This document shows positions 17,630 through 63,325 of a stretch of DNA of 64,000 nucleotides, one piece after another. The position numbers were made by a program, and so were the translations under genes. The notes under the pieces are model-generated. The model saw only the letters and a list, made by a program, of their open reading frames with translations. It was not told the DNA's origin and searched no databases. Within the stretch, counting starts at the first letter, position 1. Each line of letters starts with the position of its first letter. The DNA lies in sequence record NC_070963.1; one strand, given 5' to 3'.

Positions 17630-17954
17630 ATTTTTTGACTCTGATATTATTCAAGATGAACTGACAGAAATTAATCAGTTACAAGAGGACATTTACGGAA
17701 GTATTCTGTCTTTCGGTATGATGACCCGTGAAGACAAACTGGAACATATTGAAAAACTTGAATTGCTACTTGAAAAGCAGCGTGTAATGTACACACGTCT
17801 GTCACTTTCTGATGACCCAGAAGCAGTTGTAATGAAAGAAAATCTTCGCAAGTCAGTTGCTCTGATGGGATTTCCACCAGAAACTGATATGAACATTCTA
17901 TTTAAAAGTATGACTAAAACAATCGAATCTCTCAAACAATTTATTGACGCTTGA
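17622..17954 (+). CDS. DUF1825-like cyanophage/cyanobacterial protein
   Basis: FFDSDIIQDE; LLEKQRVMYTRLSLSDDPEA motif. Confidence 0.7.
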   Translation: MSKFFDSDIIQDELTEINQLQEDIYGSILSFGMMTREDKLEHIEKLELLLEKQRVMYTRLSLSDDPEAVVMKENLRKSVALMGFPPETDMNILFKSMTKTIESLKQFIDA

Positions 17955-18052
17955 TAAATAATTGTACCTGATCGGGTGACACTTTTCAGGTAGAAGAGGG
18001 CAACAAGTGCCCTCTTCTTGTATAAATACTTAAGTCACCCGGTTAGAGAAGA
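17955..18052 (+). promoter_or_regulatory. endonuclease leader cassette A (late promoter, 2 hairpins, late promoter)
   Basis: TAAATA 17955; ACCTGA/TCAGGT hairpin whose loop CGGGTGAC (17973-17980) is complementary to GTCACCCG (18034-18041); 10 bp hairpin 17993-18017; TATAAATA 18021. Confidence 0.7.
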
Positions 18053-18703
18053 ATGAAAAAGTATTTTTATGTTTATTATTCCTATGAGGAATATGGTAGA
18101 GGTTATATTGGAAAAAGAGAGTGTAAATGTCTACCGAAAGAAGATACAAGATATTTTGGAAGTTTTAATGACAAAACTTTCAAACCAACTCAAAAAATTA
18201 TTTTGGAAACTTTTGATAGTGTTGAGGAAGCACTTGAAGCAGAATGTGCTCTCCACGACTTTTATCAGGTAGATAAAAATCCTCATTTTGCAAACAGAGC
18301 AAAACAAACTTCAAGAAAATTTTATTATATTGCTCCTAGAGAAAATATGTTGGGAGAAAATAATCCAGCAAAAAGACCAGAAGTTAGGGAAAAAATATCG
18401 GCAGCAGCAAAAAATAGAAAAGCATCCGAAGAAACTAAAAGAAAAATGAGTGAAATGCGTAAAGGAAAACCTTCTCCAAAAGGAATGTTAGGTAAAAAAC
18501 TTACAGAAGATCAAAGGCAAAAGATAAGAGAGAAAAAGGTGGAAAGAGATAATAAGATTTGGATAATAAAAGATCCTGAAGGAAAATTACATACCACAAA
18601 TAATTTAAAATATTTTTGTGAATTAAATAATTTAACAGATTCGGCAATTCATCACGTAATTTCTGGAAAAAGAAATCATCATAAAGGATGGACAAGGGCT
18701 TGA
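18053..18703 (+). CDS. GIY-YIG (Seg-like) homing endonuclease with NUMOD-type repeats
   Basis: FYVYYSYE...GYIGK, YFGS, EA...E, basic HSEET-like repeats, HHKGW tail. Confidence 0.8.
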   Translation: MKKYFYVYYSYEEYGRGYIGKRECKCLPKEDTRYFGSFNDKTFKPTQKIILETFDSVEEALEAECALHDFYQVDKNPHFANRAKQTSRKFYYIAPRENMLGENNPAKRPEVREKISAAAKNRKASEETKRKMSEMRKGKPSPKGMLGKKLTEDQRQKIREKKVERDNKIWIIKDPEGKLHTTNNLKYFCELNNLTDSAIHHVISGKRNHHKGWTRA

Positions 18704-33078: not shown

Positions 33079-33498
33079 ATGATTATCTGTAAATCCTGCG
33101 GTAAAGAAGTTGAACAGCACCAGAGAAAAGGTGGAAGATCAAAACTTTATTGCAACGAAACTTGCCGAATGAAATGGAGATACAGAAACGATCCTTCTGT
33201 TATGAATAGGAACACTTACACGGAACAAAAAGAAAGAGCTTACTCTAATAAGTGGAAAGCACTTCAATATAAAGGTGGTAAGTGTCAAAAATGTGGTGAA
33301 GATAGACCTGCAACTCTATGCTTTCATCACAGAGATCCATCCCAAAAAGAACTAAAACTTGACGGGAGATCCTTTGCTAATAGAAAATGGGAAACAATCA
33401 AAGAAGAAGTTGATAAATGCGATCTTCTTTGCCACAACTGCCATCATATGCTACACTATGGAGATAGTTGGGGTGAGTTCCTACAAACGCTGGTTTAG
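33079..33498 (+). CDS. HNH endonuclease in tRNA cluster
   Basis: CxxC zinc motifs, CQKCG, LCFHHRDP, CDLLCHNCH. Confidence 0.8.
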   Translation: MIICKSCGKEVEQHQRKGGRSKLYCNETCRMKWRYRNDPSVMNRNTYTEQKERAYSNKWKALQYKGGKCQKCGEDRPATLCFHHRDPSQKELKLDGRSFANRKWETIKEEVDKCDLLCHNCHHMLHYGDSWGEFLQTLV

Positions 33499-33561
33499 CT
33501 CTCTGGCGAAAGCACTGCCCTCATAAGGCAAGACAGGTCGGTTCGATCCCGACAACCAGCA
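33489..33561 (+). tRNA. tRNA-Met/Ile2 (CAU)
   Basis: GCTGGTT/AACCAGC acceptor, TGCC-CTCATAA-GGCA anticodon arm, GTCGG-TTCGATC-CCGAC T-arm. Confidence 0.85.
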
Positions 33562-33603: not shown

Positions 33604-33676
33604 GCCCGTGTAGTCCAGCGGAAGAGACAGAGGACTTAAAATCCTTCCAGGGTCGGTTCGAATCCGACCACGGGCA
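33604..33676 (+). tRNA. tRNA-Leu (UAA) with short variable loop
   Basis: GCCCGTG/CACGGGC acceptor, GAGGA-CTTAAAA-TCCTT anticodon arm, GTCGG-TTCGAAT-CCGAC T-arm; 73 nt. Confidence 0.85.
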
Positions 33677-47830: not shown

Positions 47831-48434
47831 TGAGTATCCAGTTTTGAGTATGTCAGAGAGAACACAAGAGTTTATGAATGCTGTATGGGAAGCACGAAAT
47901 GCTGGTGCTGATACGGAAGAAAAACTGGTTGCAGCAATTCTGAAGACTGCTGCAGAAACTGTGAGATTTTATCAGGCACAGAATGACTTGATTGTGCTTG
48001 ATAAGAATGATATGTTGGAACTTGCAAAAGAACTTGAAGAATGAAAGAACTTCCTGATAAAAGAGAACTGGACATTATGTGGACGGTTGCCACTTCGACC
48101 AGTATTGAAACTGGACGACGACCCCACTACGGTTTCGCCCAGATGCTGTATGATTATCTTGTAGACAAAAAACCCCTTGTTGAACTTGGTGATGACAAAC
48201 TTTTACACAAAACTCCCGAACTGTGATGTTCTTCGCAGTAAGATTGATGTCTTTGAACTTACTGATGAGGCAGAAAATCAAACCTATCGTGTAGAACTCA
48301 CGGTAGATAATTCTGGTGTCTTTATTACCTCTTGTGAAGGTGGTGCTCGTGAGGATATGAGCATTGGTCACAAGGATGTGGCAATTGCTGTTGCCCGTGC
48401 TATTCTGGAAGCATACTCCGTTCCTTATATCTCA

Positions 48435-48535
48435 TAAATAATAATACCTGATGATACGGCAATTTCACAGGTGGATTAGGTGCTTTCGGGCACCTTTTCC
48501 CGTATAAATAGTATTGCCGTATCATTAGAGTAGTT
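48435..48535 (+). promoter_or_regulatory. endonuclease leader cassette B
   Basis: TAAATA 48435; ACCTG/CAGGT hairpin with loop ATGATACGGCAAT (48451-48463) perfectly complementary to ATTGCCGTATCAT (48513-48525); AGGTGC-TTTCGG-GCACCTTTT terminator; TATAAATA 48503. Confidence 0.8.
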
Positions 48536-49072
48536 ATGTCTAACAAGACATTATGTTGCAAATGTAATGCAACAAAGGAAAATATTAAATTAAGTTATTG
48601 CAATTCTTGTAATGCAGAAAAAACAAGAACTTGGTATAAAAATAATTTAGAAAAAGCAAAAATAATAAAGAAAAGAACTTACAATAAACATAAAGAAAAT
48701 CATATAGCAAGAGCAACAAAATGGAACAAAGATAATAGATTATCTCATAGAAATTCTAACGCTACTTGGAGATGGAAACTCCGCCAAGAAATTATTGAAG
48801 AATATGGTGGGTCTTGTGCTTGTTGTGGTGAAGTAATACCAGAATTTTTATCAATAGACCACATTAATAACGATGGAAATGAAGAACGGAAAGCAAATAA
48901 TAACAAGGGAGGCGCTAAATTTTATAAAGAATTGAAAGATAGGGGGTTTCCAAAAGACAATTATCAGTTATTGTGTATGAATTGTAATTTTGCAAAAGGT
49001 CACTTTGGATCATGTCCCCATCAAGTTATGGGTTTATCAGTTGCACCAGTAATGGGAATAGATGTAATATAG
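48536..49072 (+). CDS. HNH homing endonuclease
   Basis: CACCGE...LSIDHINNDG...YQLLCMNCN. Confidence 0.8.
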   Translation: MSNKTLCCKCNATKENIKLSYCNSCNAEKTRTWYKNNLEKAKIIKKRTYNKHKENHIARATKWNKDNRLSHRNSNATWRWKLRQEIIEEYGGSCACCGEVIPEFLSIDHINNDGNEERKANNNKGGAKFYKELKDRGFPKDNYQLLCMNCNFAKGHFGSCPHQVMGLSVAPVMGIDVI

Positions 49073-49136
49073 GACACTTGACGAACTGGACCACTCCACT
49101 TGCTCTGGGGTGGTTTTTGCTTTATAATACTCTCAT
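49073..49136 (+). promoter_or_regulatory. early-promoter cassette copy 4
   Basis: GACACTTGACGAACTGGAC, stem, TATAATACTCTCATA. Confidence 0.75.
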
Positions 49137-50239: not shown

Positions 50240-51248
50240 TGGAAAGGAGAAAACCCTATGTCTGGTGGTCATTTCGGTGATTATGACTATTACAAGGTTC
50301 AACAGTTTGCTGATGAACTTGAAGTAGAAATCCAAAACAACAACAAAAAACTGGATGAGTATGAGTATGCTCCCAATTTTTCACCAGAAACTATCAAGTA
50401 TTTGAGGAAGCAACTTCGTCAGATGCGTAAGATGGCAGAGATTATGAGGCATATTGATTATCTGTATAGTGGTGATCATGGTGATGATAGTTTTATGGAT
50501 CGTGTAAAAGAAGTAGAGAAACACTGGGAAGAGTGTGAAGACCTTGCTAATCGTATGGATGAATGGAATGAAACTGGAGATGGAGTATGACGCATCCAGC
50601 AAATGATTGGGAATGGTCTGATGATGCTGAAAAGGGATTTAATGAGTGGTTCAATCAAGACTGCGGACCTTATACTTGGCAGTGTGAATGGTTCTATGGG
50701 GATTGTGAAGTAGAAGACGAAAAGACACGAAAAGACCTGATGTATAAGTGGATGCACGCAGCATATGTAAGTGGTTATGAACGAGGTCTTTATGGTAAAT
50801 TGGAGGAACAAAATGACTGACCGAAATCTAGAAAAAGAACTCAATTATTATGTCTATAATGACCCAGAATATGGGGAAGACATTGAACACATCTCTCATC
50901 CTTCCTTGATTTGTATTCTTACAGAACTGATTGATAGAGTAGAACAACTTGAAAAGGACAACGAACTCCTCAAATCTTATGCTTGGGAACAATGAAACTC
51001 TTTGACTACGAAACTTATTCTGATTATGGAACGGAATGGTTCTTTCAAGTTCTAACATCCCGCAGATTTGCTCTGCTGGATATTACAGTTCAGTGGGACG
51101 ATTATGGGTGTGATGATTTATTGCCAGCAATTCAGTTCAGTATTGGTTCAAGTCATTTGTTTGGGGGTTTTATACGATACAAACGATTTCAATTTGATTG
51201 TAGTATAATTGATTGGAAACCCCGTGATTTAAGGTGGTATCGTCTACA

Positions 51249-51347
51249 TAAATAGTAATGCTTGTGTTTGGTCGCAGAAGCAGAGATTAGGTGCTTTCGG
51301 GCACCTTTTCTTGTATAAATAGTAAAGACCAAACACAAAGTAGAACT
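51249..51347 (+). promoter_or_regulatory. endonuclease leader cassette C
   Basis: TAAATA 51249; TGCTT/AAGCA hairpin; TTGTGTTTGGTC (51262-51273) complementary to GACCAAACACAA (51327-51338); same terminator; TATAAATA 51314. Confidence 0.8.
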
Positions 51348-51992
51348 ATGGTAAGTCCATACAGATTTTATACTTACGCATATTTGCGTGAAGATAGAAC
51401 ACCCTATTATATTGGTAAGGGTAGAGGAAATAGAGCATATTACAAATATAAGGGAACAAAACCACCTAAAGACAAATCAAGAATAATATTTCTCAAACAG
51501 AACCTAACAGAGGAGGAATCATTCAAACACGAAATCTATATGATTGCTGTCTTTGGAAGAAAAGATTTAGGAACTGGTATTCTTCACAATAGAACTGATG
51601 GTGGAGATGGTCCTTCTGGTTTGATAAGGACTGAAGAACATAAGAGTAAAATTCGTAAATCGTTACTTGGTAGACCTCGTTCTCAAGAAACTAAAGAAAA
51701 ATTGAGAAAAGCAAATTTAGGAAAAATTCGCAACCCTTGTTCGCAAGAAACTAAAGATAAAATAGGTGCTGCCAATAGAGGAAAAAAACACTCTAAAGAA
51801 TCTAAAGAAAAAATTGGTGCTATTTGGTCAAATTGGTGGAGAATAACATTTGATGATAATAGTGAGATTGTGATATTTGGATTATCTACTTGGTGTAAAA
51901 ATACAAAATATTGCAAATCAAGTATGCTTCGTATAGCATCAGGAAAACAAAAAACACATAAAAATGTTGTGAAGGTTGTAAAATTAGATTAA
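51348..51992 (+). CDS. GIY-YIG-like homing endonuclease
   Basis: FYTYAYLREDRTPYYIGKG, ILHNRTDGG, NUMOD3-like repeats; start reassigned to the ATG after the late promoter. Confidence 0.82.
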   Translation: MVSPYRFYTYAYLREDRTPYYIGKGRGNRAYYKYKGTKPPKDKSRIIFLKQNLTEEESFKHEIYMIAVFGRKDLGTGILHNRTDGGDGPSGLIRTEEHKSKIRKSLLGRPRSQETKEKLRKANLGKIRNPCSQETKDKIGAANRGKKHSKESKEKIGAIWSNWWRITFDDNSEIVIFGLSTWCKNTKYCKSSMLRIASGKQKTHKNVVKVVKLD

Positions 51993-52050
51993 GACACTTT
52001 ACAAACTGGAACAAGGGTACTTGAAAACAGGTGCCCTTTCTGGTATAATA
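51993..52050 (+). promoter_or_regulatory. early-promoter cassette copy 6
   Basis: GACACTTTACAAACTGGAAC, GGGTAC-TTGAAAACAG-GTGCCC, TTGAAA-17-TATAAT. Confidence 0.8.
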
Positions 52051-54645: not shown

Positions 54646-54723
54646 GACACTTGAAGAACTGGCACAAGGAGACCCCACAAGGTCTCCTATTGGTCTATAA
54701 TACTCTCATAAGCAACCAAACCG
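54646..54723 (+). promoter_or_regulatory. early-promoter cassette copy 8
   Basis: GACACTTGAAGAACTGGCAC, GGAGACC/GGTCTCC stem, TATAATACTCTCATAAGCAACCAAACCGATG. Confidence 0.8.
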
Positions 54724-55960
54724 ATGATTGACCTCTCTCAACTGACCGAAGACCAAATCAACGAACTTGAACTTCAAATCCAAAAACATAAGGAAGAACA
54801 AAAACACAAAGATAATCTAAAAAATCTAAAAGGTTATAAAGTGACCTTTTATGTGAGGTTTGACCCTGAAAAGCATAAGGATGATGATATGCTTACAGAT
54901 GAGGGAGAACTTGACCCGAACATTTTTGCTGATTATTTGTGCGATAATGTTGTTGGACAACTGGTTATGAATTTTGATTTGCGTGGTTATGAGGATGTGA
55001 GTTATCCTAATGTGGAAGTAGCAACTCAACAAGATATTGAAGACAAGTTTTGAGGAACTGAAATGAAACTCCTTGTAGTCAATCTTCAAAATCCCAACGA
55101 TACAAAATATCACAATCCAAAGAATATTGGAGTTTTTATGTGGGGTCGTCGTCTTTCTAATTATCCTATGTTTGCTGTGAGTGAGAATGGTGAAATGAAA
55201 CAGATTGTTCTTGAAAGTGCTGATGTTATGGAAATTCAAAAGCAAGTAATGGAGCAACTGAAATGAGATACTACGATAGAACTTATGAGCACCAGTGTGA
55301 CTTTGATGCTAAAAACAGAGCAGAAAAAGCATCACAAGATTACTACAAAAAGTGGATAAATCTTCGTAAAGAAGTAAAAGAACTGGTGAGAACTCAAAAC
55401 ATTTCTATTACACCTGAATTTGCTAAACTGATTGGATTGAAATGACTGACGAAGAATACCAACCAAGAAATCGTGAGAAAGCAAAACAAGCAAAGTATGG
55501 AATGGTGTGGTGTGGGGTGTGCGATAGACAAATCGTGTCTGATGGTATAAAATGTCCTGTATGCGGACACAGACACAAACCGAAGAAAATTAGGTATGAC
55601 TGATAAACCAATCACAGCACAAGAACTTGAAGAACTTTTTGGTAAGGTAGATTGGGAACAACTCATTAGGGATGAAGTCCTCAAAGAAGGTGCAGAAGAA
55701 ATACAAAGACAACACGATCATCACTTACTGACTACTTTGTATGGTAGTAGTTTTGCTGATATGGTTATGATAGAACCAGGAGTTTATAAGTATATGAAAT
55801 ACAATCGTAAAATGAATGTCTTTGAGAAGTTAGAGGCATCTTGGTGGTGGATGACGCAAATTTTTGAAGAGTGGTGTTGGCAAATGACACACGATGATGG
55901 AGAGTTCTTTCACTATCTTCAAACTGATTACTGCAAATATGAGGAGGATACTTACTACAC

Positions 55961-56058
55961 TAAATAATAGTGCTTGTGTTTCGCAACTATAGCAGAGGAA
56001 AGGTGCTTTCGGGCACCTTTTCTTGTATAAATAGTATTGCGAAACACAAAGTAGAACT
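55961..56058 (+). promoter_or_regulatory. endonuclease leader cassette D
   Basis: TAAATA 55961; TGCT/AGCA hairpin; TTGTGTTTCGCAA (55974-55986) complementary to TTGCGAAACACAA (56037-56049); same terminator; TATAAATA 56026. Confidence 0.8.
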
Positions 56059-56742
56059 ATGACTTCACAAAGTCCAAGAATTTACATATATAAAATTATT
56101 TTTGAGGAAGTACCTTATTATTACTATGGAGTTCATAAGGAAAAAAAGTTTAATGAAGAGTATTTTGGGTCTCCTGTAACTCATAAATGGTGTTGGGAAT
56201 TTTATACTCCAAAAAAGCAGATATTAGAATTTTTTGAGTTTAGTGATGAAGGATATATTAAAGCACAAGAAGTTGAAGCAAGATTGATTAGACCTGTATT
56301 TAATATTGATAAATGGTGTTTGAATGAAAATTGCTTGGGTGTTTTTTCTTTGGAACAAAAACGAAAAGCAGGAAAGATAGGAGGAAAAAATTCATATGAA
56401 ATGAAACTTGGAGTTCATGGAAGAACAAAGGAACAAAAAGTTGAAGATGCAAAAAAAGGTGGATTGATTGGTGGAAATATATCAAAAGAACTGGGTTTGG
56501 GTATTAATTCATTAACATCACAAGAAAGAGCAGAAAATGCAAAAAAAGGTCATATAATTCAAAAAGAACTTGGTCTTGGTTTGTATGGAATACCAAAAGA
56601 AAAAAGAATTGAAACCGTTAAAGAAGTCAATTCTCAACGATGGGAATGTTGCAAAACAGGTTATATTTCAACTTCTGCTGGACTTACAAAATACCAAAAA
56701 TCAAGAGGCATAGACACTTCTAAAAGACGCAGATTATCATAA
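56059..56742 (+). CDS. GIY-YIG (Seg-like) homing endonuclease
   Basis: IYIYKI...YYYYGVH, YFGS, A..VE..LI, CLNEN; basic Gly-containing repeats. Confidence 0.75.
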   Translation: MTSQSPRIYIYKIIFEEVPYYYYGVHKEKKFNEEYFGSPVTHKWCWEFYTPKKQILEFFEFSDEGYIKAQEVEARLIRPVFNIDKWCLNENCLGVFSLEQKRKAGKIGGKNSYEMKLGVHGRTKEQKVEDAKKGGLIGGNISKELGLGINSLTSQERAENAKKGHIIQKELGLGLYGIPKEKRIETVKEVNSQRWECCKTGYISTSAGLTKYQKSRGIDTSKRRRLS

Positions 56743-56745
56743 AAA

Positions 56746-56810
56746 CCACTTGAAGAACTGGAACAAGGGCACTTGAAAACAGGTGCCTTTTCTGGTATGA
56801 TACTTCTATA
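56746..56810 (+). promoter_or_regulatory. early-promoter cassette copy 9
   Basis: CCACTTGAAGAACTGGAAC, GGCAC/GTGCC stem, TTGAAA-17-TATGAT. Confidence 0.8.
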
Positions 56811-57329: not shown

Positions 57330-57410
57330 GACACTTGAAGAACTGGCACAGGGACACTCCAAATGCCCCTGTGATGCCCTATAATACTCTCATAAGCAAC
57401 CAAACCGATG
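57330..57410 (+). promoter_or_regulatory. early-promoter cassette copy 10
   Basis: GACACTTGAAGAACTGGCAC ... TATAATACTCTCATAAGCAACCAAACCGATG (leader identical to copy 8). Confidence 0.8.
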
Positions 57411-61530: not shown

Positions 61531-61596
61531 GACACTTGAACAACTGGAACAAGGGCACTTGAAAACAGGTGTCCTTTGCAGTATAATACTCTCATA
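61531..61596 (+). promoter_or_regulatory. early-promoter cassette copy 11
   Basis: GACACTTGAACAACTGGAAC, GGGCAC/GTGTCC stem, TTGAAA-17-TATAAT. Confidence 0.8.
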
Positions 61597-62400: not shown

Positions 62401-62407
62401 TGGTAGA

Positions 62408-62514
62408 TAAATAATAGTGCTCTAATGTGTTCGCATCCATAAGAGTGGAAAAGGTGTCTTCGGGCACCTTTTCTTGTATAAATAGTATTGCGAACACAAT
62501 TTAGAAGCAGAACT
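62408..62514 (+). promoter_or_regulatory. endonuclease leader cassette E
   Basis: TAAATA 62408; CTCT/AGAG hairpin; TGTGTTCGCA (62426-62435) complementary to TGCGAACACA (62489-62498); GAAAAGGTGTC-TTCG-GGCACCTTTTC; TATAAATA 62477. Confidence 0.8.
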
Positions 62515-63273
62515 ATGGTAAATCCTAATAGGTTTTATACTTACGCATATCTACGGGAAGATAGAACTCCTTATTATATTGGTAAAGGTAAAGGAAATAG
62601 AGCATTTTCTTCAAATAGGACAATAAACAGACCAAAAGACAAATCAAGAATAATATTTCTCAAACAGAACCTAACTGAAGCAGAAGCATTCAAGCACGAA
62701 AAGTATATGATTGCCGTGCTTGGTAGAAAAGATTTAGGAACTGGAATACTTCATAATAGAACTGATGGTGGAGATGGTGCTTCGGGTTCTGTTAGGAGTA
62801 AAGAATCCAAAATAAAATGTAGTGAATCAAAGAAAGGTGAAAAGAATCCTCAATACGGTAAACGAGGTAAGAATTCTCATAATTATGGGAAATCTCCTTC
62901 TGAAGAAACCAGAAAAAAATTAAGTGAGAGGCAAAAAGGTGAAAAGAATCACAATTATGGCAAATCTTTTTCCGAAGAAACCAGAAAAAGAATGAGTGAA
63001 GCACGAAAAGGTGAAAACAATCCTATGTATGGTAAATCACGTTCAGAAGAAAGCAGAAAAAAGCAAAGTGAATCACTTAAAGGTAAATATGGTGGAGAAA
63101 AACACTATCTCTACGGTAAATCACCTTCAGAAGAAACTAAAAGAAAAATAGGTGAGACAAATAAAGATAAAAAATGGTGGAACGATGGCAAAGAAAATAC
63201 TAAATTTACTGAAGAATGTCCTGGAGAAAATTGGGTTCCTGGTCGTGGAAAGAAAAAACTATGTGTCACCTGA
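62515..63273 (+). CDS. GIY-YIG-like homing endonuclease with NUMOD3 repeats
   Basis: FYTYAYLREDRTPYYIGKG, ILHNRTDGG, multiple SEETRKKMSE/GEKNP.YGK repeats. Confidence 0.85.
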   Translation: MVNPNRFYTYAYLREDRTPYYIGKGKGNRAFSSNRTINRPKDKSRIIFLKQNLTEAEAFKHEKYMIAVLGRKDLGTGILHNRTDGGDGASGSVRSKESKIKCSESKKGEKNPQYGKRGKNSHNYGKSPSEETRKKLSERQKGEKNHNYGKSFSEETRKRMSEARKGENNPMYGKSRSEESRKKQSESLKGKYGGEKHYLYGKSPSEETKRKIGETNKDKKWWNDGKENTKFTEECPGENWVPGRGKKKLCVT

Positions 63274-63325
63274 CGAACTGGCACGAGAAGACTTGATTTT
63301 TATTGAAATTTTGGTATAATATCTG
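63264..63325 (+). promoter_or_regulatory. early-promoter cassette copy 12
   Basis: GTCACCTGACGAACTGGCAC then TTGATT-16-TATAAT. Confidence 0.65.

Follow-up and report, generated by a model that had tools for sequence, protein, structure and literature searches.

The DNA analysed here (the window) comprises, at 100% identity, bases 1-64000 of Synechococcus phage S-SRM01 (240,842 bp; MW015081.1), a freshwater T4-like cyanomyovirus of the Kyanoviridae, and the comparison took in the whole genome. At 48536..49072 of the + strand it carries the gene of a 178-aa HNH/Endonuclease VII-like homing endonuclease, which is annotated as an HNH endonuclease, matches endonuclease VII/HNH in PHROG and gives a weak match to Pfam Endonuclease_7. 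A cassette reaching from a promoter-like box to the start codon of this gene (48433..48541, + strand) was recognized by reading the sequence and by a match of 94.9 bits to the covariance model R1, which is described below. Its first element, P1, is a TAAATA late-promoter-like box (48435..48440, +) with a predicted transcript start at 48446, and the ORF upstream of it, 48177-48437, terminates at the TAA of this box. Hairpin 1 (48446..48472, +) has the stem ACCTG/CAGGT and holds in its loop a 13-nt anti-leader segment, arm 1 (48451-48463). In hairpin 2 (48478..48499, +) a GC-rich stem with a UUCG-type loop precedes a T run in the manner of an intrinsic terminator; an identical hairpin at 51289-51306 was listed by the terminator scan. 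Then come P2, a consensus late promoter TATAAATA (48503..48510, +) with a predicted start at 48516, and the leader (48513..48535, +), where arm 2 (48513-48525) matches arm 1 exactly in reverse complement and a conserved TAGAGTAG stretch 3' of arm 2 base-pairs to the 5' strand of hairpin 1.

An earlier note on this DNA had described one upstream layout shared by five endonuclease genes, and our reading of the sequence confirmed it in all five places. The order is the same in each copy, namely P1 TAAATA, hairpin 1 with the anti-leader, a GC hairpin followed by a T run, P2 TATAAATA, the complementary leader and the ATG, altogether about 105 nt. All copies and their genes lie on the + strand. The copy at 17953..18059 (R1 score 78 bits; arm and folding analyses) has P1 at 17955-17960, hairpin 1 at 17966-17991, arm 1 at 17973-17980, hairpin 2 at 17992-18018, P2 at 18021-18028 and arm 2 at 18034-18041; it precedes a Seg-like homing endonuclease gene with NUMOD3 and an I-HmuI-like NUMOD (18053..18703; phrog_314 homing endonuclease, 2.5e-26). 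The other three were each recognized by the R1 match, the arm scan and folding. At 51247..51351, P1 (51249-51254), hairpin 1 (51260-51281), arm 1 (51262-51273), hairpin 2 (51289-51306), P2 (51314-51321) and arm 2 (51327-51338) stand before a homing endonuclease gene of the GIY-YIG type ('YAYLRE') with NUMOD3 (51348..51992; profile matches). The cassette at 55959..56062, with P1 at 55961-55966, hairpin 1 at 55971-55994, arm 1 at 55974-55986, the core of hairpin 2 at 56002-56017, P2 at 56026-56033 and arm 2 at 56037-56049, is followed by a gene of an uncharacterised family (56059..56742, 227 aa), a probable mobile endonuclease by its context. The last copy (62406..62518) consists of P1 (62408-62413), hairpin 1 (62419-62446), arm 1 (62426-62435), the hairpin 2 core (62453-62468), P2 (62477-62484) and arm 2 (62489-62498) and precedes another 'YAYLRE' gene of the GIY-YIG type, which has six NUMOD3 repeats (62515..63273; profile matches).

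The exact complements between the arms that had been reported were recovered by the scan: 8 nt (17973/18034), 13 nt (48451/48513), 12 nt (51262/51327), 13 nt (55974/56037) and 10 nt (62426/62489). These are the correct exact cores, but as lengths of the arms they are too short, the true complementarity extending over 16-19 bp with a conserved outer helix included. The designation of all five downstream genes as endonucleases was borne out for four, whose proteins match the profiles NUMOD3, I-HmuI-like, Endonuclease VII/HNH and PHROG homing endonuclease; the 56059 protein matches none.

Beyond the window the S-SRM01 genome contains a sixth cassette before an HNH-type gene at 192520 and a variant seventh before a GIY-YIG gene at 77663. 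The start annotated in MW015081.1 for the gene at 192466-193167 falls within the cassette, which puts the true start at 192520; the product read from there (MNYLK...) is an HNH-type homing endonuclease by PHROG 655. The variant, at 77559-77668 before the GIY-YIG gene, represents a second subtype of the cassette, with one long hairpin (GGGCAGCAAC...GTTGCGTAAGTCCC) and a T run, the anti-leader in the apical loop and arm 2 adjoining the ATG, and it is common to five relatives in IMG/VR (L045, L070, L075, L076 and L084; L048 is a duplicate of L045).

In a genome-wide arm scan the 30 nt after each of 98 ATAAATA sites were compared with the preceding 110 nt, and a reverse complement was sought. A complement of at least 6 nt was absent at 41/98 sites, merely 6 nt were found at 28 of the 98, and all complements of 10 nt or more precede endonuclease-like genes. 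If up to 3 mismatches are allowed, the block formed by hairpin 2 and P2 is found at four places, whereas the expected number is 0. With R1 exactly the six main-type copies were matched in the genome, and no other gene is preceded by a match. Promoters were not treated in the genome paper of S-SRM01. The cassette matched no Rfam family at the gathering score and gave chance matches far under the threshold; two tRNA genes (33489-33561 and 33604-33676) are the sole Rfam matches in the window.

Distribution of the cassette and borders of the mobile unit

In metagenomic phage contigs about 100 endonuclease genes have this cassette in front of them, and nearly all IMG/VR loci encoding relatives of the 51348 protein have the same upstream layout. 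The model R1, for which 65 cassettes were used and the long helix was set as the structure, gave 85 matches in GIY-YIG loci. Matches that had not been chosen by the downstream gene precede two HNH kinds, classical GIY-YIG genes, the 'YVYYSYEEYG' type and the 'YAYLRE' type; owing to this variety of nucleases behind unselected matches the link of the cassette to at least six mobile nuclease families holds, so that the tie to endonucleases of several families proposed earlier was not only confirmed but widened. R1 found no cassette in 74 loci that encode distant homologues of the HNH protein at 48536 and come mostly from other phage types, and therefore the cassette belongs to the phage lineage and not to this protein family. 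When one cassette was compared with cultured phages by blastn, S-SRM01 itself and chance matches were returned and nothing else, a search that is uninformative because the cassette is too short and too variable. Tandem nuclease units, often of different families, were also observed in IMG/VR contigs, with second cassettes 1-2 kb 3' of the first (L043 2724-2833; L071 2614-2720; L035 2568-2669; L037 3217-3326; L061 2743-2854).

The protein encoded at 56059 deserves separate treatment. Since it has no match in Pfam, PHROG, NCBIfam or PDB, its nature as a probable mobile endonuclease is judged from its context. At least 1714 metagenomic relatives were found, none with a Pfam domain, and a G-x-G-containing repeat is present in the family in variable number. 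All 14 IMG/VR loci of this family carry the cassette; these loci are outside the training set of R1, and each has new complementary arms. In the AlphaFold model (pLDDT 70) the N-terminal order is strand-strand-helix-strand-helix; a GIY-YIG fold is not supported, as Foldseek against the PDB returned nothing below E = 3.5. The 56059 proteins are possibly an undescribed family of homing endonucleases.

The borders of the unit could be read from the comparison of an occupied locus (L201) with two empty ones (L177 and L203). The insert starts exactly at the P1 TAAATA, which replaces the last codon and the stop of the upstream ORF, and it ends just 5' of the conserved module ACTTGA-N-GAACTGG; GGAC is present at both junctions. 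It was shown in this way that the cassette is the 5' end of a mobile endonuclease unit and travels with the gene, and from the borders of the insert it follows that the unit consists of P1, hairpin 1, hairpin 2, P2, the leader and the nuclease gene. Many relatives exist of the conserved gene that lies 3' of the 48536 nuclease gene, and a cassette is missing upstream of most of them.

The module at the 3' border belongs to a repeated intergenic element, ACACTTGA-M-GAACTGG-M-AC, after which come a stem-loop, TATAAT and, ahead of the next ATG, a conserved leader. Seven copies are in the window (49074-49092, 51994-52012, 54647-54665, 56746-56764, 57331-57349, 61532-61550 and 63266-63284) and 13 in the genome as a whole, all of them on the + strand. 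Three of these sites were called sigma-70-like promoters by the promoter scan, and a nuclease unit stands directly upstream of four of the seven modules in the window. The module resembles an early promoter cassette (sigma-70-type) of the plastic region, and it may be the landing or homing site of the nuclease units. Judged by its sequence surroundings, the unit lands at the 5' edge of this putative early-promoter module, which could restart early transcription of the next gene. A terminator-like hairpin with a T run (49088-49116), directly past the stop codon of the 48536 gene, overlaps the early-promoter module. Promoter-early stem-loop (PeSL) cassettes, short repeats between the small genes of the plastic regions of T4-type phages, were reportedly described by Arbiol, Comeau and Krisch in 2010. 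The module 3' of the nuclease genes, with its -35-like hexamer, stem-loop and TATAAT, looks of this kind, whereas the endonuclease cassette has late promoter boxes instead of early ones and, in addition, a covarying long-range helix.

Pairing between the anti-leader and the leader

For the analysis of covariation 74 distinct cassettes were aligned to R1. Paired cells amount to 95.4% as compared with 67.5% in shuffles, in an alignment that is fitted to the structure and so favours pairing. The covariation score was 0.718 against 0.215 for shuffled sequences and was reached by 0 of 500 shuffles; when the partner was slid by 1-3 columns as a control, it was 0.105 at most. RNAalifold on a plain MAFFT alignment returned the same two helices with many double changes. 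The co-variation of the arms claimed in the earlier note, and the covariance model with a search for compensatory changes that it had called for, thus gave a clear outcome: complementarity is kept in the relatives, with double changes in 15/16 pairs. The outer helix covaries too (TGCC with GCAG, TACC with GTAG; CG in 48 versus UA in 23 cassettes), and the mean duplex energy is -21.5 kcal/mol for cognate arms and -11.0 kcal/mol for non-cognate ones. Mismatches of the G.U type number 36 and those of the A.C type 20 (p = 0.044), an excess which fits sense-strand RNA pairing rather than a DNA structure. We consider it very likely that RNA pairing between the anti-leader and the leader is under strong selection.

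An element acting at the level of DNA, whether as a cruciform, as an operator or recognition site of the endonuclease or as the terminal repeats of a small transposable unit, is on this evidence highly improbable. Such a role has a precedent in I-TevI, which represses its own late promoter via an operator resembling its homing site (PMC2988022), and the arms do flank P2. However, unrelated nuclease families have the same conserved parts, the outer helix covaries and the wobble pairs are strand-biased. Moreover, the arms vary and the interior is conserved, which is the reverse of transposon terminal repeats, and the ends of the mobile insert lie at P1 and past the gene, not at the arms; a MITE or a transposon with terminal inverted repeats was rejected on these last two grounds.

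In the folded read-through RNA of all seven S-SRM01 copies a long-range helix of 16-19 bp is formed between arm 1 and arm 2, with hairpin 2 and P2 enclosed. Its z values are -5.6 to -7.0 in the six main-type copies (-5.9 to -7.0 in the five of the window) and -2.2 in the variant. The leader is unpaired with a mean probability of 0.65 in the P2 transcript, as against 0.24-0.27 in the read-through RNA; for the start region (-12 to +3) it changes from 0.58 to 0.35-0.40, a partial cover. The helix includes the extreme 5' nucleotide of the predicted P2 mRNA and ends 1-6 nt 5' of the AUG, and a clear Shine-Dalgarno sequence is absent. An outermost helix reaching the AU of the start codon (ATAGT/ACTAT) is present in several S-SRM01 copies and shows one compensatory change relative to the close relative L005, but it is not general (cognate 0.23 versus non-cognate 0.40 kcal/mol, p = 0.65).

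We propose that the cassette is the regulatory 5' part of a self-contained mobile endonuclease unit and acts on the level of RNA. The anti-leader, that is arm 1 with the 5' strand of hairpin 1, would complement the first 18-20 nt of the P2 mRNA. RNAs with both segments would arise from starts upstream of or at P1 that pass a leaky hairpin-2 terminator; in these the long helix would hide the leader to within 1-6 nt of the AUG and the nuclease would stay untranslated. An RNA started at P2 would be devoid of the anti-leader, and its open leader would allow late translation. Hairpin 2 would halt most of the incoming transcription, so that by silencing through the helix and by termination expression would be doubly locked to P2. 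Translational silencing, the leakiness of the terminator and the timing are those parts of the mechanism that we infer. That any transcript with both arms is silenced and only the P2-initiated late mRNA can be translated is, in our judgement, probable, though well short of certain.

Silencing in cis is consistent with the selection for pairing, the folding of the long helix, the lowered accessibility of the leader in read-through RNA and the G.U-type bias, which fits pairing of sense-strand RNA; it also agrees with a mobile insert that begins at P1. There are precedents in T4 and Aeh1 (PMC3014915, PMC2988022), and in passages of Dassa et al. cyanophage-like hairpins are read likewise (PMC2677866). 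A classical simple hairpin is found in the same genome before the Endonuclease VII-like gene at 126172: at 126123-126177 a perfect 20-bp stem (z = -7.2) has the late promoter in its loop and the start codon in its 3' arm, as in the layout of T4 gene 49 and I-TevI. A second plain hairpin at about 142260-142310, before the Endonuclease VII-like gene at 142306, has a late box in its loop and is weak (z = -2.0). The T4-like cis hairpin of read-through RNA, which the earlier note had set beside its own proposal as the established T4 case, is the best-supported minimum. Against silencing in cis it can be said that the AUG itself is left uncovered by the helix, whereas T4 hairpins sequester the ribosome binding site directly, and that a strong-looking terminator lies in the loop, so that few read-through RNAs may exist.

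Alternatively, the duplex might mainly govern the processing or stability of the RNA, the perfect helix of 18-20 bp being a site for a double-strand-specific RNase, or the buried 5' end of the mRNA altering its decay. The inclusion of the extreme 5' nucleotide in the helix and the incomplete occlusion of the AUG would suit such a role, and transcripts of T4 segB and segG and of Aeh1 mobE are cut in an RNase E-like manner (PMC2988022). Nevertheless the position of a promoter between the arms would be left unexplained, and the effect, which is compatible with a translational block, is hard to separate from it; we regard this possibility as unlikely.

The upstream promoter-like box and a predicted small RNA

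Silencing in cis by itself needs neither an invariant P1 box nor a conserved hairpin 1, which even competes with the silencing helix. The hexamer TAAATA is nevertheless present at P1 in 70/72 distinct cassettes, at a fixed spacing of 5 AT-rich nt before the first base of hairpin 1. Position -13 can be any base and position -12 is A in 51 and C in 21 of the 72 cassettes, and the genuine late genes of S-SRM01 show the same N[A/C]TAAATA spectrum. The supply of a stop codon was ruled out as the cause of this conservation, as upstream ORFs stop inside the box in only 29 of 53 cases. P2 TATAAATA is likewise found in 70/72 cassettes, 3-5 nt 5' of arm 2. In T4 the late box occupies -13 to -6 (PMC2988020), and by this rule, with +1 six nt past the box, the predicted P1 transcript begins at the first base of hairpin 1.

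The predicted RNA from P1 to the T run has a mean length of 56 nt, and in 72/72 cassettes it folds into a 5' hairpin and a terminator hairpin. Hairpin 1 begins at nt 1-2 in 69/70 cassettes, as against 13.6% of shuffles, with stem pair types that vary, and hairpin 2 has a mean z of -6.0. For both hairpins folding of each sequence with shuffles was used instead of a second model, because the MAFFT alignment of the segment from P1 to the T run was structurally inconsistent. On the P1 and on the P2 side alike, the complementarity specific to cognate arms goes no further than the predicted +1. Position +1 is paired in 97%, and in arm 2 the covarying bases begin with the predicted P2 +1; the pair at -1 does not vary, and at -2 pairing falls to 15% (P1 side) and 30% (P2 side), which are non-cognate levels. 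New, as features read from the sequence, are the conservation of the P1 box and of hairpin 1 and a complementarity that ends at both predicted start sites.

The terminated P1 RNA may add an effect in trans, the reading favoured in the earlier note: if P1 works as a late promoter and hairpin 2 terminates efficiently, an anti-leader small RNA of about 50-60 nt, running from P1 to hairpin 2, could pair with the 5' end of the P2 mRNA. On the sequence evidence, which strengthens this idea, we regard such an RNA, which would be compatible with silencing in cis, as a serious possibility, if rather less likely than not. In a likewise tentative outline its loop would meet the 5' end of the mRNA first and hairpin 1 would then open; the RNA would set a threshold or a delay for the nuclease and might create a site for RNase III. 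The near-invariant, regularly spaced P1, which stop codons do not explain, argues for this RNA, and so do the box spectrum shared with the late genes and the agreement with the T4 rule. The same can be said of the universal two-hairpin fold with hairpin 1 at the very 5' end and of P1 as the first feature of the mobile insert. Complementarity is confined to the predicted transcribed parts, and the end of cognate-specific pairing at the predicted P1 start is not predicted by silencing in cis alone; that the further helix of the S-SRM01 copies is not general (p = 0.65) points in the same direction.

Several observations weigh against the small RNA. P1 may be weak, since it has C at -12 in 21/72 cassettes and, at -13, any base; in the second subtype, counting the S-SRM01 copy at 77.6 kb and its five relatives, an upstream TAAATA box exists in just 2/6. 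The arms of three related copies in the window have 8-12 nt in common, so that their RNAs would cross-react. The boundary at P1 may also reflect constraints on a promoter with another role, and as of a 2010 review T4 had no characterised trans-acting regulatory small RNA (PMC3014915). The label 'type I antitoxin-like' given earlier to the predicted RNA is unapt, and a type I toxin-antitoxin system was rejected: the RNA would come from the same strand and would not overlap its target, and the targets are nuclease-type genes of 178-252 aa instead of genes of small toxic peptides.

Relation to known systems and significance

In the IS10/Tn10 system RNA-OUT, a short stem-loop RNA of the mobile element itself, prevents translation of the transposase mRNA by pairing of its loop with the very 5' end of that mRNA, and the small RNA predicted here would act in a similar way. 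RNA-OUT is an opposite-strand transcript over the same DNA, whereas the anti-leader of the cassette is an upstream inverted repeat on the same strand and its RNA is a predicted one.

Translational silencing in cis has closer relatives. In the T4 genes e, soc, 49, I-TevI/II/III and segB the upstream RNA hides the initiation region and the late RNA is made without the 5' arm (PMC3014915), and mobE of the Aeromonas phage Aeh1 follows the same scheme of hairpin and late promoter (PMC2988022). The cassette resembles these hairpins in that an upstream segment pairs with the leader and a late promoter lies between the arms, so that expression would be confined to late times. It differs in its loop of about 50 nt with an inner terminator-like hairpin and T run, in a 5' arm displayed in the loop of a conserved hairpin with a late-promoter-like box before it, and in a helix covering the 5' two-thirds of the leader and not directly the ribosome binding site or the AUG. 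A further difference is that six or more nuclease families have it in common and carry it along when they move.

The earlier statement that this is not a described element holds in part. In passages of their 2009 paper Dassa et al. reported hairpins holding TATAAATA 5' of free-standing endonuclease genes at 'fractured gene' loci of cyanophage-like metagenomic DNA (PMC2677866). As described there, these hairpins also have a late promoter inside and two mutually complementary conserved motifs, and they were read as translational control (PMC2677866). Compared by text, those passages contain no upstream TAAATA box, inner terminator, loop-displayed arm, covariation statistics or small-RNA reading (PMC2677866); the P1 box, hairpin 1 and the start-site-bounded complementarity are the new part. 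The principle was known; what seems to be new is the composite architecture, together with its movement along with the gene and the extent of the covariation.

The plastic regions of T4-like phages are filled with homing endonucleases, selfish nuclease genes whose harm is held in check in ways that are only partly known. Here one portable module of about 105 nt serves at least six unrelated nuclease families, and more than 70 sequence variants of it keep the pairing, which is among the RNA interactions in phages best supported by covariation. Comparing occupied with empty loci fixes where the mobile unit begins and ends, and it suggests that the unit lands at a repeated early-promoter module. 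Should the predicted small RNA be true, it would move and co-evolve with its endonuclease gene as a same-strand analogue of IS10 RNA-OUT/RNA-IN, and it would be the first trans-acting regulatory RNA with an assigned target in any T4-like phage.
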